A stretch of DNA of 64,000 nt, from assembly GCF_035084215.1 (NCBI RefSeq), contig NC_090338.1:15872001-15936000 (forward strand). Reading direction: 5' to 3'. The notes beneath the pieces are model-generated. The model worked only from the letters and a program-made list of their open reading frames with translations, had not been told where the DNA came from and did not search any database. Source of the DNA: Heptranchias perlo (Eukaryota). The translations under genes were made by a program, and so were the position numbers. Numbering within the stretch: the first letter of the stretch is position 1; each line of letters opens with the position of its first letter. Shown piece after piece: positions 6,634 through 64,000 of this stretch.

Positions 6634-6637
6634 TTTC

Positions 6638-7673: not shown

Positions 7674-7759
7674 GACTGCCCCTACTTTTGGTTCAGCTGC
7701 TCCAGTGAATAAGACACAGGAAAAATCAGAAGCTCCAATTGACCTAAGGATCTGCCTGA

Positions 7760-10992: not shown

Positions 10993-11080
10993 ATGAGTCT
11001 CCCATTCTTCGGCAGCAAAATGTCAGCTGGTTTGATGTTCAGTTTCTTTGTGTTTCTACTTCGGTCTGTTTTCGCTCAGA
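10993..11080 (+). CDS. Leader exon (signal peptide [29 protein letters not shown])
   Basis: Acceptor ttcttacag ends at 10970, ATG at 10993, hydrophobic core ending VFA-Q, donor A|gtaagt (phase 1). The acceptor implies an upstream non-coding exon that I could not locate. Confidence 0.8.
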
Positions 11081-14000: not shown

Positions 14001-17000
14001 CGATTCCCCTTCCGCACTCCCAGCAAATGCTGGAAATACATATTGTGAAATTGGACACCACCAGCCCATGAGGTCAGAGTGCAGTGGCCGAAATTTACCC
14101 TCTAATGTCTTAAAGTATCACTGGATTAGGCCTGATTATTCCAGACAGACAGCTCTACACAGGGGCGTGTCTGTGTCATTGCTGAATCCATTGAATATAA
14201 AAATATGACTGAAAATATATGAAGTCCAATATTAATAATTACAAACATGCGACTAAGGAGTTGCGATTTGATATTAAAATGTTTACATTGTTCCTCTTTC
14301 TCGCAGGAAACCCAAATCATATTTATTTTTTGGACAAGAGAAATGACTTTCCACTAAAAGGACCAGACAATCCTGGAAATGGCCCTGTTGTCTGGGAATG
14401 GAAACCACACTCAGGGCAACCAATCCAGCGGCTGGTTACTTTTTACAAAGATTATTATGGCCGGTGGAATGTACAATGGAGCGATCACTTTAGAAACAAT
14501 GACTTGTACTCGATGATACAGCGGGATCCGGGTACCATTAATCTGAGAATTCGAAATCCCACCTTTGAACTTGCGGGATTGTTCACCTGGACTCAGACAC
14601 AGCCCAGAAATAAAATCCGGAAACAGTACGAAATATTTGGGATCAAAGGTGAGTGGGACAAAGACTAGAAAAGGTTCAATAAATTTATTCTCTGTAAATA
14701 ATTTCATGTGTAAAGATAAGAGATTGACATGATTACGTGAGATTTATATCACCCAGTGCAGAGTGCATCTCTCATTAAAACAACCAGGGGAAAGATTTTG
14801 TTCATTATTTCCCCTGAAATGGTCAACATGAGTGAAAGCATTTTGACAATTTCACCACAAGTAGCAAAATGAGAAAATCACCCTTTCCAGAGAGTATTCT
14901 GATCTATACACTGATGGACTCTCTGTAAAATGTAATGAATTCTGTTATGAAACCAATAGTTCACTTGTAGTAGTAGGCCCCAGTAACCTGGGACAGGTAT
15001 AAGTTTGGCCAGTATATTGCTATCCAGTGAACCTATTCGATGTGTCACTTAGTTGAGGTTCAAGAGTATGTCAAGTGTCCGGAGAACTTGTCCTCTGCCA
15101 AGGAGTTAACACCTTCAGGAAATGAAGGAGAAACATGGCAGAGAAAAATAGATAAATTGCATCAACTCAATTGTACTTAAAACCATTAGTACAAATAAAT
15201 CATAATCTTTAGAGTCTGCCAACTAAGCATATTGCTAAACAGCGACATACCCTGATTGGTTGATGTGTTTTAACATCTAAATGAGGCTAAGGTCACTGTC
15301 AAATGAATTTGATACAAAATATAATCCAATCATGAAGTGTCACAGAGACCAAAATATGATCCTGACTGTACTTGCCCTGGACCAGTGCTTCTGAGGTTTT
15401 GGCCCCAACTGCACCAGAATGAGTTGACCATAATAGAAAATCAACTAATTTACATTTTTTAGTGATGCTCATGGTACACAGTGCATGGTACACGGGGAAT
15501 GCCACCTGGGTTCTGTACCAGAGTGTTAGGCATCAGCAGCCAATGGATGCCATCATTATTTTCACCTGGCGTTCAAAACAAAGTCCCTGTTGAAGATTTG
15601 ATTATTACTTGCCATGTTGTTGCTGGGACTGAAAGTAAGGTTGGGCATTTTCGAACACGCAGTTCCTGAAGTGCCGTTCCTCATGAATACTCAATGATTG
15701 GGGCCCTGCACAGATGCATTTCAGGAGCCCCATAATTTTACTAACCTCTGGGGCTGTACTTTTGATGTGGATTTTGTGCACATGCTCCCTGTGCATGTGT
15801 TGGTTGGTCTTACTGAAGTGTGCTAGGCACATTGAGAACACAATATGCCATGAGCTTATTCCATGTCTGATAATATGGGCACTACATTTCCAGCACACCC
15901 TCCTCTGGTGAGTTTCCATCACCTGTCTATTGAGGGGTGGGCATCCACAAATGCCATCCAGACTATGTAACCATGACCTGACCCCGGATATTCCCACAGG
16001 GTCAGCAATAAAGCCCTGCTCTGCCTCACTTAGAATTTTTGGCCTCACTATCATATTCTACGGCTGAGATGCACTTGTGTGTAATCTGGTCTGATTCTTT
16101 AATGAAACAAGGTACAATAATGAGCTCATCCTAAGGTCAGTTAGAACCTAATTGTTCTAGAATGCAACTACTTACAGTAAACTGTACTACAATTTATTTA
16201 TCTGTTTTCACAGTTGAGTCAAGTCCACAGCATGCTGTGGTGGGCAGTGACGTTATACTCAGCTGTACCATCTCCAAACTCTCAGATACAGTCAGTCTTC
16301 AATGGAAACAAAGGGACTCATCTCAGCAGAACAGGAGGAACACTGATCATATCCGAATAAAGAACACAGTCTATCTGATAATCAAACATGTTAAAGTAGA
16401 GGATAAGGAGTTGTATGTGTGTGAAGTGCAGGAAAATGGATCCATTATTCTCACAGGAAAAGCAGATTTTCCTGTGACCCAGGGTAGGTGCAGTTACCTC
16501 ACAGTAGATATTAAACAGTTACTAATGTAAAACTGTTACATACAAAGTGGAGTCATACATGTCAAACATCAACACTTCATGCTTACAGTCAGCATGTGGG
16601 GGCCTGGTGCACATGTCAACATTGAACAAAATACTGGCCGCTCTCCCCTCAGTGCCACTCCTAACCGAGTGCTGCTGCTATTTCAAGTACTCACTGGACA
16701 ATAAGTAAAGTATTCCCAACCTTCTCACTTTGTTAGCTGCCAAGTTGTATTGCAGCAGCAATTAAAAAGACTGTGGGATAGTCTTGTTTAGCAAATTGAA
16801 GGATTTAGCAGAAGTAGAAAGCACAGGTATAAACTCTGTGCAAAATGTTACATATAGGAGACAGATGTTCACTGTGAAATAACCTACAAGTTGTCAACAA
16901 CTCAAACAACAGTGACCTTACTTTAAGGATTATGTTAAAGTGGGCCAAGCCCATGGAGCTGACATGTGCCCATTTTACATGGGTGAGGTGAGCACTGGAG

Positions 17001-20000
17001 GCAGAATTTTTCAAACACTTGTGAAATTCTGCATGGGCCCTTTTTTGAATAATTATTCCATATAAATGAGGATTGTACTTGCCTGAAGGAAACCATATTT
17101 GGGTCAGCAAAATGGATCCGTGCAAAACTTTAGTTCTACACAACCTGCAGCCGCCACCTGCAGGACTCCATGTTACTGACTGAATCTCATAACACTGGGC
17201 CTGTGATGTCATGGTGTCTTCAATAGCACAAAAATCTCATCATATTAAAAATCAAAAAGGTTTCATTGTTTAAACATTTCTGTGGTCTGATGGGAATTGA
17301 ATTCTTCGAAGCTGTAAAATTCTTAAACAGTTCATATCTTTAACAACACTTTAAAAAATGATGTAATGATGATCAAAGCACAAAATAGTTTTATATAATT
17401 GTGGCCAGTAATTATTCCGGGTTTTCTCTGTATCTCGGGACCTGTAAAATTCTAACACTTTGTTCTCTGTCTCTCTCTTGCAGATTTATATGATAAAAGT
17501 TACACACTTTATCGGTCAGGCACAGATCACAGTGAACTCTACCTGATTTGCTATGATTATTATCATTATTATGTTTATTCTTACAATACTGCTGCATGGG
17601 CCTGGAGGTCACATCATCTTCAGAATCAGGAGAAAGAAATAGCATCTGCTTCGAAATCTGAGCACATCAATGTAAACAGGACCTACTTTGGGAATCGACT
17701 GGTTCCCACAATGGCAAATTTTAATGGCGAGAACTTCAGTCTCAGGATTGTCCCTGTACTGTTTGAAGATGCCGGAGTTTACACATGTTCTCTGGGATCA
17801 TATGAATATGTGACCATTAAACTAATCACAGTTAAAGGTAGGAGACAGATTGTTGCCGTTGTTTTCAGTAATAAAGTCATTGTTTAAAATCTAAATGATT
17901 TTCTTGTTTACACAGTCACAGCTGAACCATCTGATGCAGTGACTGAGGGAGACACCGTTACCCTGACCTGCTCTGTCTCTGATGTCACTGAATCAATCAG
18001 ACTTGTTTGGATAAATAGTGATGGCAAAACTGTTGGAGAAAAAACATTGAATGGATGGAATGGGGAAGAGAAATCATTGAGACTGAATATTCAGAAAGTT
18101 GACAGAGGCAAAGAGAACTGGATATGTGCTTTGTTTTTTCAAAATAGGCCCCAGGTTTTCGTCCCGTACTATCTGGAGCCCAGTGGTGAGTGACATATGG
18201 TTTGATCTTTATAGTTATAACCTCGATAGAATATTCTTGTCACTTATTGGTCTTTTTGCCAGAAGTAACCCATCCTTTATATCCTGTGTGTGAGGCTCTA
18301 CCAGTGCTGCAGAGCCTCAGAAAATTTACCCTGTGATAACTCAGCAAAGCCTGGGATCGAGACTGGAAATTTCCTGGTCTGTATGTCTCAGCTACGTTCT
18401 TGGTAAAAACGCAGAGCCAGGGTAAGACCTTTTTTTTTGACAGCAAATTTGTTCAGGAGCCGTTTCCATTGGGTTCCTTATCCAAAATCAATCAGAATGT
18501 CGTGGCAGAATACCCAAAAAAAATCACAGCAAAATGTAATTCCCAGCTGCAAAAATTGCAATTGAGACTCTCCACTCTTCAGGCTCTGAAAAATTCTTCT
18601 TTTCTGCCTGTCCCAGCTGATCCTGGAAACAACTGTTTCTCATCACTGTCATTCTAATTTCGGGCTGGTGCATTGTGAGTGCAAAAGCAGGAAACTCGAG
18701 CCTGCAGAGTCATTGGCCCTCATTATTGCATATATTACATAGAATTTACAGCATAGAAACAGGCCATTTGGCCCAACTGGTCTATGCCAGTGTTTATGCT
18801 CCACAAGAGCCTCTTTGCCCGTTACTTCATCCAACCCTACACGCATATCCTTCTATTCCTTGCTCCCTTATATACTTATTTCGTTTTCCCTTAAAGGCAT
18901 CTGTGCTATTCGCCTCAACTACTCCAATTGGTAGCAAGTTTCACGTTCCAGCAACTCTCTGGGTTAAGAAGTTTCTCCTCAACTTTTTATTGCATTAATG
19001 AGTGACTATATCTTGTACTTATGGCCCCTAATTTTGAACATCCCCCTAAGTGGAAACATCTTCTCTACATTTATCCTATCAAAGTCCTTTATAATTTCAA
19101 AGATCTGTAAAAGGTCAGCTCTTTGCCTTCACTTTTCTAGAGAAAAGAGCCCCAGCCTGTTCGATCTTTCCTGATAGTTATAACCTCTCTGTTCTGGTAT
19201 CATCCTTGTAAATCTTTTTCGTATCTTCTCAAGTGCCTCCATATCTATTTTGTAATATGGAGATTTTTGAGCTCCTCCTTTTGAGGAGATTACAAGGAGG
19301 GGCGATGAGGATAGCGTATTTGATGTAATCTACTTAGCAAGGCTTTTGACAAGGTCCCACATGGCAGATTGGTCAGAAAAGTAAAAGCCCATGGGATCCA
19401 AGGGAAAGTGACAAATTGAATCCAAAATTGGCTCAGTGGCAGGCAGCAAAGGGTAATGGTTAACGGGTGTTTTTGTGACTGGAAGGCTGTTTCCAGTGGG
19501 GTTCCACAGGGTTCAGTACTAGGTCCCTTGCTTTTTTGGTATATATTAATGATTTAGACCGAAATGCAAGGGGCATGATTAAGAAGTTTGCAGATGATAC
19601 AAAAATTGGCCATGTGGTTGATAGTGAGGAGGAAAGCTGTAGACTGCAGGAAGATATCAATGGATTAGTCAGGTGGGCAGAAAAATGGGAAATGGAATTC
19701 AATCTGGAGAACAGGCTATTTTAGATCTAATATTGAGCAATGAGAAAGGGCTAATTAATAATCTTGTTGTATAGGAGCCCTTAGGAAAGAGTGACCACAA
19801 TATGATAGAATTCTTCATTAAGTTTGAAAGTGATGTAGTTCAATCTGAAACTAGGGTCATAAATCCAAACAAAGGAAATTACAAAAGTATAAGGTGCAAG
19901 TTGGTGATGGTTGATTGGGGAACTACAATAAAAGGTATGATGGTGGACAGGCAATGGCTAGCATTTAAAGAATTAATACATAATTTGCAACAAATATATA

Positions 20001-23000
20001 TACCTTTAAGGCACAAAAATCCAACAGGAAAAGTGGTCCAACTATGGCTAACAAGAGAAATTAAAGAGAATATTAAATCAAAGGAAGAGGCATATAAAGT
20101 TGCCAGAAAAAGCAGTAAATCTGAGGATTGGGAGCATTTTAGAATTCAGCAAAGGAGGATCAAGAAATTGATAAAGAAAGGGAAAATAGAATGAGAGTAA
20201 ACTAGTGAGAAACATAAAAGCGGACTGTAAAAGCTTCTATAGGTATGTAAAAAGGAAAAGACTGGCGAAGGCAAATGTGGGTCCCTTACAGACACAGACA
20301 GGAGAATTTATAATGGGGAATAAGGAAATGGCAGAGAAATTAAACAAATACTTTGGGCTCGATTTTTGGACCTCTGAGCCGGCAGGTTCGTGGCTGGGGA
20401 GGGCTCCGAAAATCGGGGATTCCCGGGGCGGGTCCGGAGCCCGGCTCCAAGCGTCCCACTTCCGGGTTCCCCAGTGATGCGCTGACATGGACGCGCAGCC
20501 CCCGCATGTGGGACTCCCGCCAGCAATTAAAGCCGGCGGGATGCCACTTAAACTAATTAAGTAGGTACTTCAGGTCATTTGCAGACCTGATTGATATGAT
20601 ATTTTAGGAGGGGTGGGATTTTCCAAACAACTGAGACTGTTTCCCGTACTGGGGGAAACACTCCCAGTTGAAATGGATGTGTTGCAGCCACCAGCCTGTG
20701 GCAGCTGCAAAGGTCCATTTGACAGGTGGGGAGGGGGGAGCCCTCACTCATTGCAGGAGGCCACTCTGACAAAATTTGGCCTCCTCCACCCTCCTTCTGA
20801 CAATCAAAGTCACCAACTTGCAACCTCAACCCCGGTGTACAAACACATTTACCTACCTTGCGGACCCCCTCAAACGTACATCATCCGGATGGGGGACGCC
20901 ATAGCTGCAGTCATGACCTCCTCGGAGGACGAACAGCATCACTGGTCACACCGTCCACCTCTGACACGTGGAGCTCCACAACACAGTGCTGTGACACATC
21001 CACCTGCACAGCAGGTGGGAGGGCAACCGCAGAGAGAGATGCGTCGCAGAAGGTACTACCCTCGCCACAGGGTCTACAGACCAAGGCTCAGCTTCCTAGA
21101 CCTCTCTGAGCAGTAGTGCACATGGAGGCTCAGAGTCACTCGACTTATACTCATGGACATCTGCAGCCTCCTTCATGCCGAGCTGCTCCCAGCTGGCTCG
21201 AGCACCATCTTCTTACCTGTCGCTGTCAAAGTCACCACTGCCCTCAACAACTTCTCCTCCACATCCTTCCAGGGTGCCACCGGGGACATCGCCGACGTCT
21301 CTCAGTCGTCTGCACAAAAGAGCCCTGAAAATACACCTACAACCACTCTGCAGTGACACAATGGGTGGCATCAGTTGCGAGTCTTCATACTGATCCTCAG
21401 GAAAGGGCATTATTGCACAAACCAGACACGATTTGCAAAGATGTGGCAGTAGTGGTGCCAATATAATATGTAATGTGAGTTGATCAGAAATCAAATATGA
21501 GTAAAAACCATGACAAACCCTCAAACACCCTTGTGCATTCCCTTCATGCTCATGAAACATTTGCCTTACGCTTCCTACTGCACATATGTGATGCATGACC
21601 TGTGGATGCAGCACAGGTAGTGGCAGGTTGAGTGAGGCTGACCATGAAAGAGATGCATCAGAGAGTGAGTATGAGACAGAGCCATGAGATTGTATGAGGA
21701 TTGGGTTGAGTGGTAGTGGTGGGATGAGTACTGGCGAGGTGAGTAACTGCAGGTAAGATGCGGATGAGCTTTGAGTGGGTTTGAGGGGTGATGTGATAGA
21801 GTAGTGTTCGCAGTGCAGAAGGAGATGTGGGGTGGGGGCGGTGATGTGGCAGATGGAGTGTAGGGGAGTGAGTAAGTGTACTCACTTTGGCTGACCTACT
21901 TAGGTCATTGAAGCGCCTCCTGCACTGTATGCAGGTGCGTGATATGTTGGTGGTGCTGGTGACCTCCTCTGCCACCTCGAGCCAAGCCTCCCTGGTGGCA
22001 GAGGCAGGCCACTTCCTCCCATCCACTGGGGAGAAGATCTCTGTCCTCCCCCTCCTCCTCACCCCATCCAGTAAGACCTGGAGTAAGGCATCATGAAACC
22101 TGAGAGCAGCCTTTCCCTTGGGCGCTCCATGCTGTAATTTTGCATATTTTCTGCCGCATCATTCAATGCAGGACTGCCCCTTTAAATAGGGCTTCTCCAG
22201 CTGACAACCTATGATGCGCTTGCGCAGTCCGCCCGCTGAGCAGCTTTCCAGCGTGAAACCTGGAAGCAAAGGTAAGTGCCTTCAATTAGTCTGCAATTGC
22301 CCACGCGCCCAGTTGACCCCCCGCTGCTAACCCGCCTCCCTCCTAATATCGGGCCCTTTGTGTCTGTCTTCATGGAAGAAGACACAAAAAAACTCCCAGA
22401 AATACTAGAGAACCAAGGGTCTGGCAAGAATGAGGAACTGAAGGAAATTAGTATTAGTAAAAAAATAGTCGTAGAGAAATTAATGGGACTGAAAGTCGAT
22501 AAATCCCAAAAACCGGATGATCGACATCCCAGGGTTTTGAAAGAGATGGCTATAGAGATAGTGGATGCTTTGGTTGTCATCTTCCAAAATTCTTTTGATT
22601 CTGGAACGGTTCCTGCAGATTGGAGGGTAGCAAATGTAACCCCACTATTTAAGAAAGGAAGGAGAGCGAAAACAGGGAACCACAGACCTGTTAGCCTGAC
22701 ATCTGCACTAGGGAAAATACTAGAATCTATTCTAAAGGATGTGATAACAGGACACTTAGAAAATAATAATAGGATTTGGCAGAGTCAACATGGATTTATG
22801 AAAAGGAAATCATGTTGAACAAACCTATTGGAATTCTTTGAGAATGGAACGATTAGAATAGATAAGGGAGAACCAGTGGATGTGGTGTATTTGGATTTTC
22901 AGAAAGTTTTTGATAAGGTCCCACACAGGAGGTTGGTGAACAAAGTTAGAGCACATGGAATTGGAGGTAATATACTGGCATGGATTGAGAATTGGTTAAT

Positions 23001-26000
23001 GGACAGAAAACAGAGAGTAGCCATAAACGGGTCTTTTTCAGGTCGGCAGACTGTGACTCATGGGGTACCGCAGGGATCGGTGCTTGGGCCCCAGCTATTC
23101 ACAATCTATAACAATGATTTGGATGAGGGGACCAAATGTAATATTTCCAAGTTTGCTGATGACACAAAACTGGGTGGGAATGTGAGTTGTGAGGAGGATG
23201 CAAAGAGGCTTCAAGGGGAGGCTAAGTGAATGGGCAAGAACATGGAAGATGGAATATCATGTGGACAAATGTGAAGTTATCCACATTTGTAGGAAAAACA
23301 GAAATGCAGAGTATTATTTAAATGGTAAGAGATTGGGAAATGTTGATGTTCAAAGGGACCTGGGTGTCCTTGTACATGAGTCACTGAAAGCTAACATGCA
23401 GGTGCAGCAAGCAATTAGGAAGGCAAATGGTATGTTGGCCTTTATTACAAGAGGATTTGAGTACAGAAGTAAAGATGTCTTACTACAATTATATAGGGCC
23501 TTGGTGAGACCGCACCTGGAGTATTGTGTACAATTTTGGTCTCCTTACCTAAGAAAGAATATACTTGCCATAGAGAGAATGCAACAAAGGTTCACTAGAC
23601 TGATTCCTGGGATGGCGGGATTGTCGTATGAGGAGAGATTGAGTAGACTAGGCCTGTATTCTCTAGAGTTTAGGAGAATGAGAGGTGATCTCATTGAAAC
23701 ATACAAAATTCTTACAGGGCTCGACAGGGTAGATGCAAGGAGGATGTTTCCCCTGGCTGGGGAACCGAGAACCAGGGGTCACATTCTCAGAATAAAGGGT
23801 AGGCCGTTTAGGACTGAGATGAGGAGAAATTTCTTCACTCAGAGGGTGGTAAATCTTTGGAATTCTCTACCCCAGACGGTTGTGGAGGCTCAGTCATTGA
23901 GTACATTCAAATCAGAGATCAATAGATTTCTAGATATTAAAGGTATTAAGGGATATGGGGATAGTACAGGAAAATGGCTTTGAGGTAGAAGATCAGCCAT
24001 GATTTTGTTGAATGGCGGAGCAGGCTCAAGGGGCTGGATGGCCTACTCCTGCTCTTATTTCTTATGTTCTTATGTTCTTAAGTGTGAGGGAATGCATTTG
24101 GAGAGGGCAAACAAAGAAACAGAATTCAAAATAAATGGGAAGATACTGGGAGGTGCAGAGGAATAGAGGGACTTTGGAGTGCATGTCCACAGATCCCTGA
24201 AGGTAGCAGGACAGGTACTTTTCTTTAGAATATAAGAGTAGGGAGGTTATGCTAGAACTGTATAAAACACTAGTTAGACCACAGCTTGAGTACTGCATAC
24301 AGTTCGGGTCACCACATTACAGGAAAGATGTGATTGAACGAGAGAGGGTGCAGAGGAGATTTACGAGGATGTTGCCAAGAATGGAGAATTTTAGCTATGA
24401 GGAAAGATGGGATAGGCTGGGGTTGTTTTCATTGGAACAGAGGAGTGAGGGGTGATTTAATTGAGGTGTACAAAATTATGAGGGGCCAAGGTAGAGTGAA
24501 TAGGAAGGACCTATTTCCCTTAGCAGAGGGCTCAGTGACCAGGGGGCATGGGTTTCAGATTATTAAGTAGAAGGATTAGAGGGGAGCTGAGGAGAAATGT
24601 TTTCACCCAGAAGGTGGTGGGGGTTTGGAACTCACTGCCTGAAAGGGTGGTAGAGGCAGAAATACTCAACTCATTTAAAAAGTACTTAGATGTGCACTTG
24701 AAGTGCTGTAACCTACAGGGCTACGGACCAAGTGCTGGAAAGTGGGATTAAGCTGGATAGCTCTTTCTCGGCCGGTATAGACATGATGGGCCAAATGGCC
24801 ACCTTCTAAGCCATAACTTTCTATGATTCTAGAACTGTGTGCTGTCCTCCAAGTGTGGTCTAACCAAGGTTCTATACAAGTTCAACATAACTTCTCTGCT
24901 TTTCAATTCTATCGATCTAGAAATGAACCCCAAATGCTTTGTTTGCTTTTTTAAGGCCTTTTAACCTGCTTCGCTATTTTTAGTGATTTGTGTATCTATA
25001 CCCCCGGATCCCTCTGCTCCTCTATCCCATTTAGACTCTTATTTTCCAATAAGTATGTGGCCTCCTTATTCCTCCTACCAAAATGCACCACCTCACTCTT
25101 ATGTGGATTGAAATTCATTTGCCATTTACACGCCCATTCTGCAAGTTTATTTATGTCTTCTTATATTTTGTCGCAGTCTTTCTCAGTATTAACTATACCT
25201 ACCAATTTAGTGTGATCCTCAAATTTTAAAATTGTACTTCCGATTCCCGAGTCCAAATCATTTCTGTAAACGGCGAACAGCACTGATCCCTGCAGAACAC
25301 CACTTCCCACCGTCCGCCAGTCTGAGTAAATGGGCGCTAAATTGGGCCGTGTAGCGCCCGTTGTTTCTGCGCTACACGGCCTCTCCGACATCCAAGATGG
25401 CGACTTGGATGCGCACGCACGTTTCCTGCGTGATGTGCGCCAGACGCCAACTTGATATAGGAGTTTGCGCAGGCGCAGATAAGAAACGCTGGAATCATGT
25501 AAAGTAGGGAGAAAATGGTTTCAATCAGTGTGCAACGCTGATTTAAAGTGAAAGACACCATTTTGGGACTTAACTCAATGCACAATCTTAACCCCAACCA
25601 TCTGAACGTGTCTTAGAATGTCTGGAGGACACCCCACCAGTGCAGGATTTACAGGTTAGTGGCGGGATTATTGCCTCTGGCTGCTGTGCATTTGCGAATG
25701 TTTTTGTGGGAGAAGTTTGGAGAGCTGTTCTGCATATGGCAGTTGATGCTAGCTCAATTGTGAAGCATTTTAAAGCAGAGATTGATGGATTTCTGTGAAC
25801 CAAGGGTATTAAGGGATATTGACTAAGGCTGGTATATGGAGTTAGGTCACAGGTCAACAATGATCTTCTTGAATGGCAGAACAAGCTTGAGAGGCTGAAT
25901 GCCACTGCCACTTGCTGCCTCCTGATAAGCGCCACCTTCTCCTGCAAGAAAGCGGGAGGTGTGCCTGGGTGATGTGCCTATCATGGTTGAATAGCTGCCA

Positions 26001-44000: not shown

Positions 44001-47000
44001 TGAGCAGTGTGTAAGATGGGGGACAGGAGGGAACAGAGGAGGCAGAGGCTGCCTTGATTTTGGACAAAAATGTCCATGAGCTCTTTGCATTTTTTATCAA
44101 AGATCACAATGGAGGCTGTGGGGAAGTGAAGTCTGAAGAGGTGGTATGTGCTGGAGGAGGAGAGTTTGCAGTGGTCCAGGATGACCTGGAGTGTTAGGGA
44201 TATTTGGTCACAGGACGATGGTGTGAAATGGCCCAGAATATGCTCCCCACCATATGGAGGGTAAGAAAGTCCACCTAAAGTTCTGGAGCTTTTCTCTGCC
44301 CTTGTTGCATGAACAGATCAAATACCTGTGGAAAAGCAAAAAATGGATTTGGTTGAAACAGGCAGCTGGTTATTGCCAAGTATATAGTTCCCTCCTCATC
44401 CTTATCTACATGCTGCTCCTCGGTGACATCATGCACAGGGTCACCTTCCATATGTATGTTGAGGACACCCAGCTCTCCCTCTCCACCACTTCCCTCAAAA
44501 CCATGACTACCATTGATGGGAGAGTCTTCAGTCACAGTCTGGAATTACCATAAAATCTCTTCACCTCTCCATTTCTCCGTGCTCCTTTAAAAACATTCTC
44601 AAGACCCATATTTTTGAACGTTCAGTTACATCTCATAATTTTCACATCATTGTTTGTTGTCTTTTTATCATTTTATCTATTTTTCCACTCTTTGTGAAGA
44701 GTCTTGGAACGTTTTTTTCATTAAATGTGCAATATAAATGTAAGTTTTTGTTTTTGTTGAAGCTATGGGGGCTGAGAAACAATAATCCTTTATAATAAGT
44801 GAAAGTCACTTTCTTCTATACAGCTCCTTACTGGGCTGTGTATGTGCTGAAATGAATGATAACTAACAACTTACTGAAAACAAATTCTCCACAGTATTAA
44901 TAATTACACAGATTGGATTGAGGAGATTGCTATCTAATTTTAAAATGTTTGTTCTCCTTTCTTGCAGGAAGCCAGAATTATATTTATTTTTTCCATCAGG
45001 AAGGCAACTTTGTAATTAAAGGGCCAGATAATCCTGGAAATGGCCCCATTGTCTGGGAATGGAGACCACACTCAGGACAACAAACTACAAAGCAATTGGG
45101 TACTTTTCACAGAGAAGGTCAGCGGTGGGCCGTACAATGGAGTGATGATTACAATAATATACCAGGCATTTCTCAGAGGATACGTGAGGACTGGGGTACC
45201 CTTAATCTGAGAATCAGAAACCCCACCTTTGAACTTGCGGGATTGTTCACCTGGACTCAGACACAGCCCAGTAACAAAACCCTGAAACAGTACGAAATAT
45301 TTGGGATCAAAGGTAAGTGGGACAAGGACTAGAGAGGGTTCAACATTATGATTTTCTGTGAGTAACTCCACATATATTCCTAACAGAATGTTGGGATCCT
45401 CTATCATCCAGCACAGAATGAAGATCTCAATAAAAACAGTCAGATGAGTATGAATCCTGTCAGCATTAGAACTAGCTTATGCACTAAGGGCTTGTAATTC
45501 TGATTGTTAGCATTAGCATTTGTTTGTAAATAATTGCCCAACTTGCTAAAATTCCTGAAACAATGGCTAGGGAGGGAGTTGGAGTTGATAGCGAGGGTAC
45601 GGAGGTCGTGAAGACGGTGGAATACGATGGCTTTGGTTCTCCCAATATTTAATTGGAAGAAATTGCAGCTCATCCAAGACTAGATGTTAGACAAGCGACT
45701 TGAGAGCATAGAAGCAGTGGAGTGTTCTCGAGAGGTGGTGGAGAAGTAGAGCTGGGTGTCATCAATATACATGTGGAAGCTGACCCAATGTCTTTGGATG
45801 ATGTTGCCAAGGAGCAGCATGTAAATGAGGAAGAGGAGGGGGCCAAGGGGGACAAGTGGACACTATCTGGGAAATGTTGATTGTCAGCACGAAGCACAGC
45901 TGCTTAGCATTTGTCTGACTCAGTCTGTTTGAAGTGAAAAGAAAATTCTGAATGCAATAGTTCAGAAAGTTTATATTTATGGAAAACTAAATCTTACTTC
46001 ATTTTTTTTTCACAGTTGAGACAGATTCACAGAGGCCTGTAATGGGCAATGACATCACCCTCAGTTGTACCATCTCCAGACTCTCAGATACAGTCAGTCT
46101 TCACTGGAAACAAAGAGTCTCATCTCAGCAGAACTGGAGGAACAACACTGATGAGATCCATCTGAATAACACAGTCTATCTGATAGTCAGTACAAAAAAT
46201 CAGAATTTGTATATGTGGGAAGTGCAGGAAAATGACTCCATTGTTCTCACTGGAAGCACAAATGTTGATGTGGATCAGGGTAAGTCCAAAGCTACCTTGC
46301 AGTATGTATTAAATAGTTACTGATATAAAACTGTTCCACACAAAGTACAGGGAGCACAGAGACCACTGTGGGATTTTCCTGCAGAATGGAGTCCTTGTTT
46401 TTGCCCTGGAAAATGGGTGTAAATAAAAATGGTGACATTAAGAGCTGATGTAACCAACCAGGTGGACTCAATGGATTCTCGTCGATTCACATGTATCAAT
46501 CAAAAAGAATAAAATCCATCAATCAATAATAGAAAATGCCATTCCAGTCTATATTGGAATGGAGAAATACAAACAAATTAAAGGTGCCCAATACATGTGT
46601 TACAAGGTTAGCGTCTTTCCTTAGATAGTCTCTTGGGTACAGTGGTGCTGGTCACTCACAAAAGTGGTCTTAGTGTCTTACATTTAGGGGTTTTCTCATA
46701 CTGCCCAATATCTGACTATATGATAACATAACCCAGGGGTGTAAGAATAAGACCCCCTTTCACGTGTACATCTTTAGCCAATTTGAAGGAGGACCAAAAA
46801 AAACCTTGGTGATACAATGTAAGTAATGAATTGTTACATTGTTTCATTTAACAGCGAGTGAACATACAGAGTAACAGATATGATCAGATTCACTTATTTC
46901 AATCAGTGCAACCTGACTATGTGTATGAGTTCACAATAATGAACATGCTACGCATTCCCACACCAGGGGGTCAACTACTTGCCTTAAACAAAATGGGAGT

Positions 47001-53000: not shown

Positions 53001-56000
53001 ATATATGCAGATGTTAGCATCCTTTTCTTCATAGCAGGACTCCTAAGATCATCATCTATCCACTTTGGAGCCAAGGACTGACTTTCCTTAGCCTCCACTC
53101 AGGAACATCAGGTTTTACGATGTGCTCTTGTCGCAGTGATTTTATGATATGTATTAATCTAGCCACATAGCTGGCACAGCTCCTACCTTTGCTGTTGTTG
53201 TCAGACTATTGAATGAAAGAAAAACTTGCATTTATGTAGCGCCTTTCATGACCTCAGGACATCCCAAAGCACTTACAATCAATGAAATATTTTTGAAGTG
53301 TCGTCACTGTTGTAATGTAGGAAATGCATCAGCCAATTTGGGCACAGCAAGATCCCACAGATAGCAAAATGATAATGACCAGATAATCTTTTATTAGTGA
53401 AGTTGATTGAGGGATAAATATTGGCCAGGACACCAGAGCGAACTTCCCTGTTCTTGCAACAATGGGGCAGAAATTACTCCTGAAATAACAGAGGAGCTCA
53501 ACAGCACTCTCCATTTTTTACGGCAAAATGAAGGAGCAAGTTTCCGCGTTTGCATGTGTGCACTAATCGTGAACTTGATCCTATTGGTTCGCCGGTGATT
53601 TGACAGCTTCAACTTAAAGGGCCATCGCATTCTGCAATCATTGAAATCACTGAAATATCACAAACTTGCTCATCTGCCCAGCTGGAAAGTAACGAATTAC
53701 ACCACCAAACAGGTCCACTTAAAAATAACAGGTCTGAACTAAGTTTCAAAAGCGCGATAACGCTTTATGTCAGCCAAACAACTAAAAATTAAATTTTTTA
53801 AAATGTGGAGTCTCATACTACTCTTATTTTAATAGTTTTTGGTCATTAAAAAAAATTAAAAATTAAAAAGTAAAATCTTTTCTTTTACTTTTCCCTTCAG
53901 GCTCTAATTTAATTCAATTATTTCTTTGGCTTTTTATTAAAAAAATAACATTTTTGTTTACAATGACTTCCAGAATATTAATTTTAAATGAATGAAGTCT
54001 GCTTGCCTGCTTGTGGGCGTGACTTCTCTTCCTGACAGGTTTTGTGGGCGTGTCTTCTATTCTTACAGACTGTTCCATGCGCATCGATTTACGCTGCTCA
54101 GAGGCTGAGTAGACTGCGTGCAATTTTTCAAAACTTCAAAATCAAGCAAGTCGACGCCACTGAAGCTGCAGTAAATACATTTGTTAATTTAATTCACAGG
54201 AGCTGCAGCGATCGCTGTCACGCCGCTCGGCACAGATTCTGGCCATTGTCTTGCAACATTGTAACAGTGTCCTGAAGTAAGAGATCTTCCACTTGCTGCC
54301 AGTCCCACTATCTTCCACATAGCTCTTGCTACACAGTTTGCAGGCTTTTTGCCTCTAACTCTCTCTGATATTGGGGGCCATGTTTGGGGCAGATGGACTG
54401 TGAACCACAACCAGGCCTTTAAACAATGGGCAGACTGGGCTGGCAGCCAGTGTATCCCCAGCCGATTTTCCTGTCCCAATGCTGCAATCCCAGCTGACTT
54501 ATGCCAGGAAGACTCTGTTTGGCCCTGTGGAAATTCAAAAACATCTGTATCTCAGTAGTTAAAATCTAACAACTTGTTTCCTGTCTCTCTATTGCAGATT
54601 TAAATAATAAGAGTTACACACTTTATCGTTCAGGCACAGATCACAGTGAACTCTACCTGATTTGTGAAGCTCAATCTGAGTACATTAAAACTAAATGGAC
54701 CTGGAGGTCACATCATTTTCAGAATCAAGAGGAAGAAATAGCTTCTACTTTCAGATCTAAGCCTATCAGACTAAACAGGACCTACTTTGGGACTCGATTG
54801 GTTCCCACAATGGCAAATTTTAATCGCAAGAACTTCATTGTGAGGATTGTCCCTGTACTGTTCGAAGATGCCGGAGTTTACACATGTTCTCTGGGGCCAT
54901 ATCCATATGTGACCATTAAACTAATCACAGTTAAAGGTAGGAGACAGAATGTTGCCGCTGTTTTTAATAATATAGTCATTGTTTAAAATCTAAATGATTT
55001 CCTTGTTTACACAGTCAGAGCTGAACCATCTGATGCAGTGACTGAGGGAGACACCGTTACCCTGACCTGCTCTGTCTCGGATGTCACTGAATCAATGAGA
55101 CTTGTTTGGATCAATAGTGATGGCAAAACTGTTGAAGAGAAAACTTTTAAGGAACAGAAGCAGGAACAGAAATTTTTACGTCTGATTATTCAGAAAGCTG
55201 ATAGAGACAGAAGCAACTGGACATGTGTTTTGTTTCATCAAAACTCGCCCAAGGTTTTAATTCCATATTATCCAAAGGTTAACAGTAAGTGTCTCAGATT
55301 TTGCTCTTTGTAACCTCCATAGAAAGTTCTTCTCATTTATTGCTTTTTTATTATGATAACCTCTTACTTTTCATATCATGTTGCACTCAATATTATATTA
55401 ATAGTTCACAGTCATAGGTGTTCACATATAACAGTTTAACATCAAAAGTCAAACTGTAATGGAGAGAAGCTGAAGAGGAGTAAATTTTTAAACAATATTT
55501 GCGGTCCATTACACTCCTGTAAGGAGCATTTTAAATGTTAAATCCCCTCCTGCCCATTGTAATCAGACGAGATGTGAGAAAATGTGACACATGATGTCAC
55601 TCTGTCCCTGCAACTCATTTGAATATGACCCACACTTGACCAGTGTCACTTCTGACAGGAAATCCAGGAAGTGGCGCCGATTGGCCAGAGAATGATTGGC
55701 CGGGGAATGATTGGCCGGAGAATGATTGGTTAGGAATTATAGAATGACTGCCTGGCCGACTGACTGTCCCAGGTCCATGTGAAATGGGATTGGGAAGGGA
55801 GCAGAAATAACTTGCTTGCCATTTACTCTTGGAAATTTAACTTTATAGCTCTGGAAACTAGAGCTCCAGGTTTCTTGTTTCGGAGTAAATTTGCCTCTGA
55901 ATTACACCCATCAATAGAATAGGGAATCTGAGGGTACAGGTCACCGACACCCAGTTGCATGCAATTTATATTGTTCAACTAACTTCAGGGCCAACCACCT

Positions 56001-59000: not shown

Positions 59001-61058
59001 TTTTAACTGCTTTTTCAACCTGTCCTGTCACCTTCAAAGATTTGTGCACATATACCTCCAGGTCTCTCTGTTCCTGCACCCCCTTTAGAATTGTATCATT
59101 TAGTTTATATTGCCCCACCTCGTTCTTCCTGCCAAAATGTATCACTTCACACTTCTCTGCATTAAATTTCATTCATGTGTCCCCCCATTCCACCAGCCAG
59201 TCTGTGTCCTCTTGAAGTCTATTACTATCGTCTTCACTGTTCACTACACTTCCAAGTTTTGTATCATCTGCAAATTTTGAAATTGTGCCCTGTACAATCA
59301 AGTCCAAGATATTAATATATATCAAAAAAAGCAGTGGTTCTAGTACCGACCCCTGGGGAACACTACTGAATACCTTCCTCCAGTCCGAAAAACAACCGTT
59401 CACCACTACTCTCTGTTTACTGTCACTTAGCCAATTTCGTATCCATGCTGCCAATGCCCCTTTTATTCCATGGGCTTCAATTTTACTGACAAGCCTAGTG
59501 TGTGGCACTTTATCAGATGCCTTTTGAAAGTCCATACGTTCTACATGAATTGCATTGCCCTCATCAACCCACCCTGTTACCTCATCAAAAAACTGAATCA
59601 AGTTAGTTAAACACAATTTGCCTTTAACAAATCCATGCTGGCTTTCCTTTATTGATTCATACTTGTCCAAGTGACTATTAATTTTGACCCGGTTTATCGT
59701 TTCTAAAACCTTCCCCACCACCGAGGTTAAACTGACTGACCTGTAGTTGCCGGGTTTATCCTTAAACCCTTTTTTGAACAAGGGTGTAATATTTGAAATT
59801 CTCCAGTCCTCTGACACCACGCCCGTATCTTTGGATATTTGGAAGATTATGGCCAGCACCTCCACAATTTCTACCCTTACTTCCCTCGCATTGCATCCGA
59901 ACCGGGTGACTTATCTACTTTAAGCTCAGCCAGCCTTTCTAGTACATCCTCTTTATTAATTTTTACCCCATCCAGTATCTCAACTATCTCCCTTTTTACT
60001 GTGACTTTAGCAGCATCTTCTTCCTTGGTAAAGACAGATGCAAAGTACTCATTTAGTACCTCAGCCATGCCCTCTGTCTCCATGCGTAGACTAAGATTGG
60101 ATATTTGGTTTGTGGCACATCATGGTCACAAACTCATTCCATGATGGTGTCTTGCTGCTCTAATATGCATTGTGGTGCCATTACTTATGTTTCATTATTA
60201 AGGATTCATTCTTGCTAAATATTATGGCCATGAAGATACTGTATGAATTTTCTTTCCTAATTCTCTGCCAGTTTTCTCCTCTTTCCTCTTCTCCTCTCGT
60301 GTTCGGGTAGATCTTGACTTTGTGTAATTGTGTAAAATGGGCGATAGTCGGCAGCCCATTTTACATCTCTCCCCATTTTTATTTCCATCCATTTTACACT
60401 CGCACAAAGACAAGATCCACCCCATTGAATGCAGTTCTCATTCAAATAGACATTATTCAAGTATTAACCTAGACAATGAGTATCGTTGACCTATTGTACA
60501 TTTTCCACACTATTCACCTGAGGAAGGAGGAAGCCTCCGAAAGCTTGTGGAATTTAAAATAAATTTGTTGGACTATAACTTGGTGTTGTAAAATTGTTTA
60601 CTATTGTACATTGGAAGCATCACAGCTAAATCGCATCCTTTTCTTAACAGTCATTTGCACACATCTCCTTTACAGAAGGAATCCCTGGATTGTAACCAGG
60701 AATTAGAACCCTGTGTGATTTTTTTTCCCTGTCCCTAACTGAAGGGTCCTGAGGATAATTGTAGCACTCCTACATTCCTGAGTGAGGTCAGTTAACTTGG
60801 ATCATGAATTAAACCTAAGACCCTCTGGTCTGTACGCCTTAGTGGTAAATCAGGCAGTAGTTTTTTTTAATGGGTCATTAGGGGAGTTTTAAAAAAATGT
60901 TACATTAATCTATAAACTAAATGTGAAATCTATGCTTCTTCTTCTGACAGATGATTACACTTTTAAACATACCAATGTTGTTATTTTTGGGAGTCTGGCT
61001 CTTCTCCTCATCATTATCCTGGCAGTGGTGCTGTGTTTAAGAAAGTTCAAGGCAGCAG
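10993..61058 (+). CDS. Multi-exon type I membrane Ig-superfamily receptor, leader + 3x(V-C2-V-C2) + TM; CD4/LAG-3/G6F-like architecture; 3' end incomplete
   Basis: Exons 10993-11080, 14307-14648, 16214-16483, 17484-17837, 17916-18185, 37956-38300, 38707-38979, 42244-42582, 42661-42930, 44968-45312, 46016-46279, 54598-54936, 55015-55284, 60951-61058. All have AG/GT boundaries, all introns are phase 1, all internal exon lengths are multiples of 3, and there are no in-frame stops. Confidence 0.88.
12255..12625 (-). mobile_element. CR1 3' fragment
   Basis: [27 protein letters not shown]; tagaaaca tail. Confidence 0.85.
13548..13867 (+). mobile_element. CR1 3' fragment
   Basis: [16 protein letters not shown]-coding DNA; ttcttatg tail. 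Confidence 0.8.
14307..14648 (+). CDS. Ig exon A1, cysteine-less V-like domain
   Basis: tcgcag| ... |gtgagt; WEW C-strand, [19 protein letters not shown] strands. Confidence 0.85.
16214..16483 (+). CDS. Ig exon B1, C2-like domain
   Basis: cacag| ... |gtaggt; [19 protein letters not shown]. Confidence 0.9.
17484..17837 (+). CDS. Ig exon C1, V-set domain (absent from ORF track)
   Basis: ttgcag| ... |gtagga; [21 protein letters not shown]. Confidence 0.9.
17916..18185 (+). CDS. Ig exon D1, C2 domain with WxC motif
   Basis: 78-bp upstream intron; [16 protein letters not shown]; donor gtgagt. Confidence 0.9.
19712..24080 (+). mobile_element. CR1 LINE, 5'-truncated ORF2 with (ttcttatg)n tail
   Basis: ORFs 19802-20477 and 22276-23983 ([26 protein letters not shown]). 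Confidence 0.9.
20355..22356 (+). mobile_element. Non-autonomous Harbinger (internally deleted), copy 1
   Basis: TIR gggctcgatttt / aatatcgggccc, TSD ttt, interrupts a CR1 ORF2; keeps transposase and Myb 5' ends. Confidence 0.88.
25332..26880. mobile_element. Second non-autonomous Harbinger family with Myb remnant and internal CR1 3' fragment
   Basis: Starts gggcgctaaattgg, TSD aat/aat, minus-strand [23 protein letters not shown]. Confidence 0.75.
28223..31921 (-). mobile_element. CR1 LINE, near full-length: ORF1 SGNH esterase + ORF2 APE endonuclease/RT
   Basis: [19 protein letters not shown] (31190-31888); ITETWL (30699-31154); RT (28310-30644); (atagaatc)n tail. Confidence 0.92.
34295..36350 (-). 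mobile_element. Non-autonomous Harbinger, copy 2 (inverted)
   Basis: Perfect 11-bp TIR gggctcgatat, TSD atg, interrupts a CR1 endonuclease. Confidence 0.9.
37956..38300 (+). CDS. Ig exon A2
   Basis: Paralogue of A1 and A3; ttgcag| ... |gtaagt. Confidence 0.88.
38707..38979 (+). CDS. Ig exon B2 (F-strand Cys replaced by Trp)
   Basis: ttacag| ... |gtaagt; ITLSC ... LYTWEV. Confidence 0.87.
39416..40161 (-). mobile_element. Non-LTR retrotransposon 3' fragment, same family
   Basis: [24 protein letters not shown]; absent from the paralogous site at about 46715. Confidence 0.8.
41587..41830 (-). mobile_element. SINE 3' half (paralogous copy at about 53215-53455)
   Basis: Same core and tail as 8600-9048; shared by units 2 and 3. 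Confidence 0.7.
42244..42582 (+). CDS. Ig exon C2, V-set
   Basis: ttgcag| ... |gtatga; [17 protein letters not shown]. Confidence 0.9.
42661..42930 (+). CDS. Ig exon D2, C2 with WxC
   Basis: 78-bp intron; NWIC; donor gtaagt. Confidence 0.9.
44968..45312 (+). CDS. Ig exon A3
   Basis: Near-identical to A2; canonical splice sites. Confidence 0.88.
46016..46279 (+). CDS. Ig exon B3 (Cys to Trp, 9 bp shorter than B2, in frame)
   Basis: cacag| ... |gtaagt; LYMWEV. Confidence 0.85.
47227..49059 (+). pseudogene. Myb/SANT-like DNA-binding protein of the Harbinger element (spliced, disrupted)
   Basis: [33 protein letters not shown]; donor after VVK; second exon has a stop. Confidence 0.8.
49293..50500 (-). 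pseudogene. HARBI1-like DDE transposase of the Harbinger element
   Basis: AIDC..., [43 protein letters not shown]; frameshifted; 5' end approximate. Confidence 0.88.
51383..52438 (-). mobile_element. Solo LTR of the same retroviral family
   Basis: Colinear with 6638-7673; 4-bp TSD ATCA; empty site in the paralogous intron at about 40781-40800. Confidence 0.92.
53465..54244. mobile_element. MITE-like insertion
   Basis: Imperfect TIR gggcagaaatt / agattctggcc; absent from the paralogous site at about 41821-41850. Confidence 0.6.
54598..54936 (+). CDS. Ig exon C3, V-set
   Basis: ttgcag| ... |gtagga; [17 protein letters not shown]. Confidence 0.9.
55015..55284 (+). CDS. Ig exon D3, membrane-proximal C2 with WxC
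   Basis: 78-bp intron; NWTC; donor gtaagt. Confidence 0.9.
55678..55737. repeat. 15-bp minisatellite (GAATGATTGGCCRGR), about 4 copies
   Basis: gattggccagagaat gattggccggggaat gattggccggagaat gattggttaggaat. Confidence 0.8.
56655..58362. mobile_element. Related copy of the second non-autonomous Harbinger family
   Basis: Colinear with 25332-26700 including the CR1 fragment; ends approximate. Confidence 0.7.
58363..60090 (-). mobile_element. CR1 LINE 3' part
   Basis: RT ORFs 58483-59865; atagaatc tail. Confidence 0.88.
60503..60600 (+). mobile_element. Penelope-like retroelement 3' fragment
   Basis: Flanked by 12-bp direct repeat CTATTGTACATT (60491-60502, 60601-60612); contains a hammerhead and AATAAA. 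Confidence 0.7.
60512..60553 (+). ncRNA. Minimal type I hammerhead ribozyme
   Basis: Stem I AUUCAC / GUG(G)AAU, CUGAGGA core, stem II GGAGG-aag-CCUCC, GAAA, palindromic AAGCUU helix III. Confidence 0.7.
60951..61058 (+). CDS. Transmembrane exon ([27 protein letters not shown])
   Basis: ctgacag| ... |gtaaga; about 21 uncharged hydrophobic residues followed by a basic stop-transfer; phase 1-1. Confidence 0.85.
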
Positions 61059-61312
61059 GTAAGATTTGTAAATTGCTGCAACTAATTTCAGGTTTCATCC
61101 ATGTAAGAAAATGTGAATGTGGCTCATAATTCCAAAAATTAGGAATGACAATTATATCTTTGTTTGAAATTAAATGATATAATCCACTAGGATTAGAGAA
61201 ATAGATGTGTTTGTGTTTCGATGTGTCAAACAGTCTAGGACGGCAATGGTTCCTGAATTGCTGGAATGATGGAAGTTCTGCACTAGGCTATGCAATTGGT
61301 CAAAAATGAATA

Positions 61313-61722
61313 ACAACAACTTGCATTTATATAGCGCCTTTAACACAGTAAAACGCCCCAAGGCTATTCACAGGAGCGTTATCAAACTAAATTTGACATC
61401 AAGCCACGTGAGGAGATATTAGGACAGGTGACCAAAAACTTTGTCAAAGAGTTAGGTTTTAAGGAGCGTCTTATAGGAGGAGAGAGAGGTAGAGAGGCAG
61501 AGAGGTTTGAGGAGGGAATTCCTGAGCTTAGGGTCTAAGCAGCTGAAGGCACAGTGGAGCGATGAAAATCAGGGATGCGTAAGAGGCCAGAATCAGAGGA
61601 GCACAGAGAACCTCGGTGGGTTGTAGGGCTGGAGGAGGTTACAGAGATAGGGAGCGGTGAGGCCATGGAGGGATTTCAAAACAAGGATGAGAATTTTAAA
61701 ATCGAGGCATTGCCGGACCGGG
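61313..61722 (-). mobile_element. L2-like LINE 3' end
   Basis: aacaacaacttgcatttatatagcgccttt tail shared with the SINEs. Confidence 0.65.
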
Positions 61723-62325
61723 CATAGTTTAGGTTACAAGGTTAGATGGGTGTTGTGGATATTTCTCAGTTATCTTTGAAACCAGGGAAACATAATTTGG
61801 GACATTTAGTAAGTCGAGTGAATTTCACAATAGAACCATCAATACATGGTCTACAGGAGGAATGGGTTTAATGGGCTGAATGATCTTCATATTCCATACA
61901 TTTTTTACTTATGTTGGTTATATCTGGTCATGAAAAGCTTTGAAGGGCACGGGGATAAGCCAATATATTATAATATATAGAGCTCCATTCATTTTCTGAC
62001 TGCAGGAATTTGACCCGTGAAATGTAACATGTTGACTTGAATAATAATGATTAAGTCCTAGAGTTTTTTAGAGCAGATTGCCTCGAAGGAAGTTCAGTTT
62101 TCTTTTCTCGAAATATTACCTATTCATCTCAAGATAGAGAGAGGTGGACAAAATAAATTATAGATAGTTTACGGGAGTTATAAACTGTGCCTAATGCATT
62201 GGATGGAGGAAACTTGATTCTCTGAATGACCTCTTCTGTACTTTTTAAAAGCTTTATGCTTAAAAGCTAATATTGTATCTCTCCAATGACTCAGTGTTTC
62301 AGAGTGTAGTAAATGAGCTGTACTG

Positions 62326-63970: not shown

Positions 63971-64000
63971 CATCCAACTGAACAGGCAGACAGAGTCTCG

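Follow-up and report, generated by a model that had tools for sequence, protein, structure and literature searches.

What kind of gene is made up of twelve successive immunoglobulin (Ig) domain exons that follow one another as the same series of four, three times over, and how did such an array arise? The question is posed by a 64,000-nucleotide stretch of the genome of the cartilaginous fish Heptranchias perlo (NCBI RefSeq assembly GCF_035084215.1, contig NC_090338.1, positions 15,872,001 to 15,936,000 of the forward strand). This whole stretch is referred to as the window, and positions are counted from its first letter. An original prediction made from the letters alone had placed one receptor gene with a triplicated V-C2-V-C2 cassette resembling that of CD4 and LAG-3 at positions 10993-61058. 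The analysis described here indicates that the locus is probably one transcribed gene for a type I receptor, composed of three V-C2-V-C2 units of the CD4/LAG-3 type with 12 Ig domains in all. It also places the gene in a large family of fish receptors and identifies the middle unit as a chimera of the other two.

Exon structure of the gene

Stop-to-stop frames of the forward strand include 12 long open stretches, which are of four sequence types (A, B, C and D) and occur in the order A-B-C-D three times. Each of the 12 is bounded by a polypyrimidine-AG acceptor and a GT donor, is in phase 1 and is free of stops. Together with one leader exon and one exon for a stalk and transmembrane (TM) segment they total 3877 nt, equivalent to about 1292 codons, and all were found at the coordinates originally predicted. 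The chance of a single stop-free stretch of 113 codons is ∼(61/64)^113 = 0.004 by our own arithmetic and twelve such stretches are present, so the open frames are beyond explanation by chance. The intron between C and D is 78 nt long in units 1, 2 and 3 alike. The codons split at the junctions match the residues of related proteins, with Q-R-NPNH at the leader, PSG-S/C-QNY between D and A, and KVN-N-DYTF between D3 and TM. Local base composition is ordinary for a vertebrate, ranging from 39-54% G+C per 2-kb bin, and there are no runs of N.

The B, C and D exons score as Ig domains in Pfam, some of them only below the gathering cut-off, and the A exons have no Pfam match. When exon A1 was folded alone with an alignment of family members, the model was a V-set Ig fold (predicted local distance difference test, pLDDT, 89; predicted template modelling score 0.82). 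Foldseek matches this model to 2B4 (top) and NITR10, VIA-align to NITR11 (Z 13.7) and NTB-A (Z 13.2). On the Pfam scores of B, C and D and the V-set fold of A1, all 12 exons are taken to encode Ig domains, those of A and C being V-set and those of B and D of a short C2/I-type. As first noticed from the translations, every D domain has Trp-x-Cys (WxC) in the F strand (WIC, WIC and WTC in D1, D2 and D3) and B1 has YxC (YVC). The corresponding residues are YTW in B2 and YMW in B3.

Searches by blastn with the leader and TM regions detected no second leader or TM exon anywhere in the window. Likewise, 93 leader peptides of the family have a sole tblastn match in the window, at 10993-11082 (E 5e-9). 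The last 2.9 kb (61059-64000), searched by tblastn with the tails of relatives, contains no cytoplasmic exon and no TM exon of the lysine type, and the tail exons lie beyond the end of the window.

Transcripts

Transcript data were obtained as Logan contigs from four runs (X1-X4) of one sample and mapped onto positions 41500-47000. Depth over the introns of this region is about zero, and the runs therefore look like RNA. Three joints were read directly, each at GT..AG sites. These are C2-D2 (42582/42661, skipping 42583-42660) in four runs, D-A3 (42930/44968, skipping 42931-44967) in X1, X3 and X4, and A3-B3 (45312/46016, skipping 45313-46015) in all four. In a further contig, B3 is spliced at its end to a C exon that departs from C2 at 24 sites; C2 and C3 likewise differ at 24 sites, and 20 of the 20 mismatches listed carry the C3 letter. 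This contig runs on into a D exon, giving the chain B3-C3-D3. With C2-D2, D-A3, A3-B3 and B3-C3 all joined at GT..AG sites, the units are spliced into one mRNA, and we infer the joint between D1 and A2 (18185/37956) and a full-length 12-domain molecule. The exon borders of both D-to-A junctions had been predicted to the exact nucleotide.

Contigs identical to C2 were found in X1 and X2, at a depth similar to that of the C3-type contigs. Transcripts thus exist for both versions, so that both are real and duplication in the assembly is excluded. The repeated layout might in itself suggest that units 2 and 3 belong to genes of their own, are relics of dead exons or were duplicated in the assembly, and nothing further speaks for this. 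It is very unlikely, given the D-to-A joints in transcripts, the lack of any extra leader or TM exon and the intact frame of every exon. Moreover, exon sequences diverge between units by 4-7% and intron sequences by 12-25%, which is far more than an error of assembly would produce. The single gene originally proposed is thus upheld.

D 3′-ends of two types continue into an A exon, the D2 type and one with all 8 letters specific to D1. The latter is carried by record 17 of X3 (295 nt). Its first 104 nt have all 8 D1-specific letters, and the other 191 nt match A3 at all but one position, whereas 9 sites in this part distinguish A2 from A3. Very probably, a transcript or allele that joins D1 straight to A3, and hence has 8 Ig domains, exists beside the forms with unit 2, and some transcripts probably lack unit 2.

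It is possible, though on balance rather unlikely, that the receptor is usually made with 8 Ig domains, from units 1 and 3, unit 2 being either a cassette that is sometimes included or absent from one haplotype of the sampled animal. Besides the D1-to-A3 contig, X3 and X4 have only C3-type contigs on C2, and the closest Heptranchias protein model, P0044, runs B1-C1-D-A3-B3-C3-D3. However, the C2-identical contigs of X1 and X2 reach depths like those of the C3 type, D2-type 3′-ends are also spliced to an A exon, and unit 2, for want of a separate leader, has to be spliced to exons upstream. The absence of C2 from X3 and X4 is weak evidence, since Logan contigs are short de Bruijn contigs from which rare variants are dropped.

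Two single-nucleotide differences were seen in the mapped region. Position 42859 in D2 has A for G in all contigs of X1, X3 and X4, and position 45184 in A3 has A for G in many contigs. At both sites the sampled animal probably carries another allele than the assembly.

Table 1. Exons of the receptor gene, and its longest D-to-A intron, in the 64,000-nucleotide window
Feature	Position	Strand	Basis or remark
Leader (signal peptide) exon	10993..11080	+	ATG at 10993; donor A/GTAAGT, exon/intron; phase 1
A1, cysteine-less V-set Ig domain, distal unit	14307..14648	+	AlphaFold pLDDT 89; V-set structural matches
B1, C2-type Ig domain with YxC	16214..16483	+	Pfam, frame, splice sites
C1, V-set Ig domain with Tyr-rich loop	17484..17837	+	Pfam, frame, tree
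D1, C2-type Ig domain with WxC, after 78-nt intron	17916..18185	+	Pfam, transcript contigs
D1-A2 intron, 19.8 kb	18186..37955	+	Homologous to 2.0-kb D2-A3 intron (blastn)
A2, V-set domain of proximal (unit-2) type	37956..38300	+	95.4% nt identity to A3
B2, C2-type domain with YxW (F-strand Cys to Trp)	38707..38979	+	Frame, alignment
C2, chimeric V-set exon, 5′ proximal-type and 3′ distal-type	42244..42582	+	Informative sites; identical contigs in X1, X2
D2, C2-type domain with WxC	42661..42930	+	95.9% nt identity to D1
A3, V-set domain	44968..45312	+	Contigs link A3 to a D exon and to B3
B3, C2-type domain with YxW and 3-residue deletion	46016..46279	+	Same deletion in Heptranchias P0044
C3, V-set domain	54598..54936	+	Pfam; B3-to-C3-type contig
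D3, membrane-proximal C2-type domain with WxC	55015..55284	+	Pfam; proximal D clade (98)
Stalk and TM exon without charged residue, phase-1 end	60951..61058	+	97% identity to TM of Heptranchias P0085/P0078

A family of receptors in cartilaginous and early-branching ray-finned fishes

A profile of the three A exons retrieved 38 proteins from 1.84 billion representative proteins, and when a four-domain relative, P0007, and a profile of 30 sequences were then used as queries, the number of family proteins rose to more than a hundred. All statements at the level of the family refer to such predicted proteins. Members were found in sharks, rays and the chimaera Callorhinchus, with more distant ones in sturgeon, paddlefish, bichir and eel. 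They are annotated as 'uncharacterized protein' or bear incidental names, e.g. 'obscurin-like' for the nurse-shark protein V9NJF3. No paper describing the shark and ray family was found, including in the literature on shark paired Ig receptors and MDIR. The searches show a multigene family, unnamed in databases, in chondrichthyans and some early-branching ray-finned fishes. One protein, P0006 (2398 aa, 29 partial matches in the A-profile search), is a bacterial repeat protein and was discarded as a false match.

The exons of the window each share 90-97% identity with the Heptranchias perlo protein that matches them best, the exceptions being A1 (77%), C1 (87%) and C2 (84%), in agreement with the cartilaginous-fish origin that had been deduced without knowledge of the source. 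The W of the D domain is present in all listed relatives except one (Leucoraja u2, 'HRC'). The B domain, which is the D2-like one, lacks WxC throughout the family and has YxC or YxW instead.

Hidden Markov models (HMMs) built from the window's own exons were used to define the architectures. Some members are AB, CD or ABD and many are ABCD, and about thirty, from nearly every elasmobranch and 850-994 aa long, are ABCDABCD. The longest arrangement is that of the catshark Scyliorhinus canicula, in which RefSeq model P0001 (XP_038652085, LOC119965406; 1710 aa) has BCD followed by three ABCD units, equal to at least 15 Ig domains. The catshark protein belongs to the family, has more than two units and shares the TM type and the ITIM (immunoreceptor tyrosine-based inhibitory motif) tail type. 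It differs from the window gene in being an independent expansion, its extra units having B, C and D of the distal type, and is a computer model only. Long forms are thus not unique to the window gene; the 12 domains behind its original description as a greatly elongated member are present, but the length does not set it apart.

Long forms have tails with YxN and I/VxYxxI/V/L (ITIM) motifs, and the membrane span of many short forms includes a lysine. Examples from the tails of relatives are LYSNA, IHYASV and VIYAQI, and the two Heptranchias proteins that match the window's TM exon (Table 1) bear YxN and ITIM tails. In several species, neighbouring LOC numbers occur in runs on the same contigs, which indicates gene clusters. 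ITIM-tailed members and short members with a basic TM segment, with like ectodomains and clustered genes, make up the pattern of paired inhibitory and activating Ig receptors. Membership in a large multigene family of this kind had not been recognised in the original prediction.

The organisation resembles that of KIR/LILR, CEACAM, NITR and skate MDIR, which are also clustered multigene families with long ITIM forms beside short basic-TM forms, and in which domain number varies by duplication of exon blocks. However, the domain types and the CD4-like pairing of domains differ. The domains of MDIR are said, in work by Cannon et al. from 2006, to resemble those of CD300, pIgR and TREM.

Loops similar to the Tyr-rich one of C1 (17552-17584) occur in the distal C domain of shark relatives (YDYYNNYVYSY in Heptranchias, HDYSGHYYYPS in nurse shark and YSYYEY in white shark), and to judge from these sequences the loop is an old feature of the distal C domain type and no new expansion. 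Two models from the eel Anguilla rostrata, P0016 and P0029, are predicted as series of ABC(D) blocks that include internal TM segments. They would be explained by the merging of several tandem genes during gene prediction or by a true expansion of the receptor family in eels.

Relationship to CD4 and LAG-3

When the 30-sequence family profile was compared with 177,635 distinct PDB sequences, LAG-3 ranked 3, 4, 5 and 8 and many CD4 chains were listed, with pIgR and CEA just above LAG-3. The HMM alignments with LAG-3 extend from the end of the V domain through the whole of C2, and place the WxC of the family on the 'WGC' of LAG-3 D2. Single exons A1 and C1 yielded only generic or chance matches in PDB sequence searches.

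The AlphaFold model of the four-domain relative P0007 (pLDDT 80) includes two strands, 132-147 and 336-350, that cross the A/B (143/144) and C/D (347/348) borders. A strand across the V-to-C2 border is rare among Ig proteins and considered characteristic of CD4 and LAG-3 (PMC10768021, section 3.6). Searched with this model, Foldseek ranks LAG-3 1 and 3 and CD4 5-9, and VIA-align ranks CD4 1-5 (Z 15.4-18.0). In VIA-align, D3D4 of rat CD4 superposes on C-D of the model with a root mean square deviation of 2.8 Å over 170 residues, and D3D4 of LAG-3 scores Z 13.2 with 22% identity. D1D2 of CD4 superposes on either rod (V-C2 pair) of the model at 3.0-3.5 Å over about 170 residues. In the ESM atlas, two 'g6f-like' clusters, the nearest that bear a name, rank 2 and 3 (score 0.97) and CD4 clusters rank 5 and 8, a result used as a lead only.

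The family profile against PDB, the Foldseek and VIA-align results on the AlphaFold model and the border-crossing strands together support an assignment of the V-C2-V-C2 cassette to the CD4/LAG-3 type, as had been suggested from the order of the domains, and the receptor itself is neither CD4 nor LAG-3. The exclusion of CD4 was correct, but one of the arguments given for it, that domain 1 is not split by an intron, fails. True CD4 and LAG-3 of sharks exist separately and also lack the D1 intron (PMC10768021).

With LAG-3, the shark receptor shares the type I V-C2-V-C2 build, WxC in the last C2 domain, one strand across the V-to-C2 borders, an inhibitory-type tail (in its relatives) and, in sharks, the lack of an intron inside D1. 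Unlike LAG-3, it has YxC or YxW in B, belongs to a multigene family with activating-type partners, and may have 8, 12 or more domains. With CD4 it shares the four-domain build of two rigid V-C2 rods, but its first V domain lacks cysteines and it is not single-copy. The closest relatives (P0135, P0085, P0044 and P0133) have no Cx(C/H) motif, which binds LCK, in their tails, and the relatives' tails inspected show LYSNA, IHYASV and VIYAQI in place of the (F/Y)xxL(D/E) motif of LAG-3. When the TM and tail of P0135 were searched in the ESM atlas, C1orf162, LST1 and SCIMP were returned at 0.81, which is chance level, and these candidates were rejected.

A generic V-C2 Ig receptor of the CEACAM, nectin, SLAM or FcRL kind, in which the likeness to CD4 and LAG-3 reflects convergence or model bias, would account for the slightly higher rank of pIgR and CEA in the profile search, and for the single-domain profiles, which yield only PD-1, CD276, CD22 and LAIR1. 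The Tyr in place of Trp in the B-domain motif, and the closeness of the A domain alone to 2B4, NTB-A and NITR, are also in keeping with it. We consider it unlikely, though a serious competitor, since four-domain LAG-3 and CD4 stand at or near the top in three different searches, the HMM alignment covers the V end and the whole C2 with WxC on WxC, both two-domain rods superpose on D1D2 or D3D4 of CD4 at ∼3 Å over ∼170 residues, and the border-crossing strands are rare in other Ig proteins.

G6F is said to resemble CD4 and LAG-3, and the family could instead be the cartilaginous-fish counterpart of teleost G6F-like and tetrapod G6F. The two high-ranking atlas clusters point in this direction, as does YxN in many family tails, including that of sturgeon P0028, which ends YDNV..YENC. 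G6F is a platelet/thrombocyte receptor, and G6fL has four Ig domains, YxN and an ITAM (immunoreceptor tyrosine-based activation motif) (PMC3528668); four Ig domains, one TM segment and a YxN tail are thus common to both. However, the shark family is multigene and modular with paired forms, whereas G6F-like is described as one gene, and it has ITIM-type motifs where G6F-like has an ITAM split over two exons, a comparison made by description and atlas rank only. No ITAM was seen in the relatives' tails inspected, for which no dedicated ITAM scan was run. A search with P0028 retrieved only unnamed proteins of sturgeon, paddlefish and bichir and no named G6F-like. A G6F counterpart is judged improbable.

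Origin of the additional unit

Units 2 and 3 are alike through their introns, at 84-88% identity in blastn. In addition to the A2/A3 and D1/D2 pairs in Table 1, nucleotide identities between exons are 92.9% for C2/C3, 88.2% for C1/C2 and 83.7% for D2/D3. At sites that distinguish unit 1 from unit 3, unit 2 carries the unit-3 letters as far as about 42417-42488, within the C exon, and the unit-1 letters from about 42439-42509 on, through D2 and beyond. The informative sites therefore read 3333...1111, with the switch in a crossover zone at ∼42417-42509.

The trees place C2 and C3 within the membrane-proximal C clade of sharks and rays (SH-aLRT 96). C1 lies among the unit-1 C domains of other sharks, outside the proximal clade, although its own fork is poorly supported. 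D3 belongs to the proximal D clade of sharks and rays (Table 1), and D1 and D2 are placed with the D domains of the distal type. The YxW motif of B2 and B3 might be read as decay; this was rejected because proximal B domains carry it, as a conserved feature, in nearly all 8-Ig proteins of elasmobranchs.

Unit 2 is thus a chimera, with A, B and the 5′ part of C of the proximal type and the 3′ part of C, D and the following intron of the distal type. This is the signature of one unequal crossover in a conserved 8-Ig gene. The term 'triplicated' used originally is right for the three units but overstates the history, in which an old 8-Ig form gained a single chimeric unit. A single unequal homologous crossover, in which the proximal C exon of an 8-Ig inhibitory gene recombined with the distal one, would have kept both frame and phase. 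The two-unit gene would be older than the split between sharks and rays, the chimeric unit being inserted afterwards. In the simplest history, the expansion of the catshark gene and the duplication in the chimaera are independent events. Divergence between duplicate introns is d = 0.12-0.15 in most cases, with extremes of 0.05 and 0.25, which indicates that the duplication is old.

Selection on the duplicated exons

For the young pairs (A2/A3, B2/B3, C2/C3 and D1/D2) pooled, dS is 0.074, dN is 0.057 and dN/dS is 0.77. Exon dS and dN are both under half of the intron divergence, and all frames and splice sites are intact. These values point to exon constraint or to gene conversion limited to exons, and purifying selection, which had been proposed from the open frames alone, is moderately supported: the low exon divergence and intact frames favour it, but the ratio does not allow more. 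Near-neutral dN/dS is common among immune receptors. The A domains are the most divergent between distal and proximal units, with dN of about 0.3.

Assessment and proposed working of the receptor

A number of points weigh against one transcribed gene with three CD4/LAG-3-type units. The window's own single B and D profiles do not pick out CD4 or LAG-3, and the structural likeness rests on the AlphaFold model of a relative, P0007, AlphaFold having been trained on CD4 structures. The contigs are short and from one sample, none spans all 12 domains, and the RNA nature of the runs is a guess. An 8-Ig product very probably exists, as the 295-nt contig indicates, and may be commoner. The dN/dS of the young pairs is near neutral, and the cytoplasmic tail is deduced from relatives and was not read in the window. 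We nonetheless regard the 12-domain receptor gene as the probable explanation of the locus.

If the model of P0007 applies to the window gene, each V-C2 pair would form a rigid rod by way of its border-crossing strand, as in CD4, and the ectodomain would consist of six rods joined by hinges. It would be ∼3 times the length of CD4 if each unit measures like four CD4 domains. The likeliest contacts for ligand would be the three A and three C V domains, especially the divergent A domains and the Tyr-rich loop of the distal C, in view of the dN between A domains and the presence of that loop. The tail beyond the window is predicted to carry YxN and ITIM motifs as in the closest relatives. By analogy with known inhibitory receptors, binding of ligand would lead Src-family kinases to act on the ITIM/YxN tail, which would recruit SH2 phosphatases or Grb2 and lower activation. 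Short relatives with a lysine in the TM segment may be the activating partners, signalling in the opposite sense via ITAM adaptors.

CD4 and LAG-3 have been treated as a two-member family of uncertain origin (PMC10768021). The present results point to a large group of receptors with the same rare two-rod ectodomain and with both inhibitory and activating-type members, and the family offers a concrete outgroup for the origin of the co-receptors of major histocompatibility complex (MHC) class II. A more far-reaching proposal, which we put forward as speculative and doubtful, is that the family represents an expanded third branch of the CD4/LAG-3 lineage which retains an older mode of life as clustered paired receptors, CD4 and LAG-3 being descended from such a family. 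On this proposal its members might bind MHC class II or MHC-like ligands, and the number of units (8, 12 or 16 domains) might tune reach or valency. The 12-domain gene itself is a lineage-specific curiosity and the family is of more value, but the gene illustrates neatly how a receptor gains a whole four-domain unit through one unequal crossover between exons that keeps the frame.

Transposons and flanking sequence

Apart from the receptor gene, transposons alone were found in the window, and the introns contain transposable elements, as had been noted from the letters. Pfam detects RVT_1 (reverse transcriptase of long interspersed nuclear elements, LINEs), the GDSL type of LINE ORF1 and the DDE_Tnp_4 transposase. 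The D1-A2 intron has been swollen from 2.0 to 19.8 kb by transposons inserted at ∼18727-27296 and ∼28023-37088. It includes an inverted pair of 1.9-kb element copies, 88% alike (20391-22300 on the + strand and 34377-36314 on the - strand), that flank a block of LINE fragments. A LINE in the same intron at 28310-31888 (-) has a GDSL-esterase-type ORF1 at 31190-31888 and reverse-transcriptase pieces at 29421-30644 and 28310-29119. Further reverse-transcriptase fragments lie at 22276-23983 (+) and 58741-59865 (-).

The B3-C3 intron carries a Harbinger/PIF-type transposon at 47200-50300, with a DDE_Tnp_4 transposase open reading frame at 49293-49955 (-; E 9e-30). Beside it is an open reading frame for 294 aa, at 48175-49059 (+), with no Pfam match. 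The retroelement upstream of the gene had no match in a collection of phage sequences. Upstream of the gene and outside it, positions 1-8000 of the window are G+C-rich, with 57% G+C up to 6 kb.

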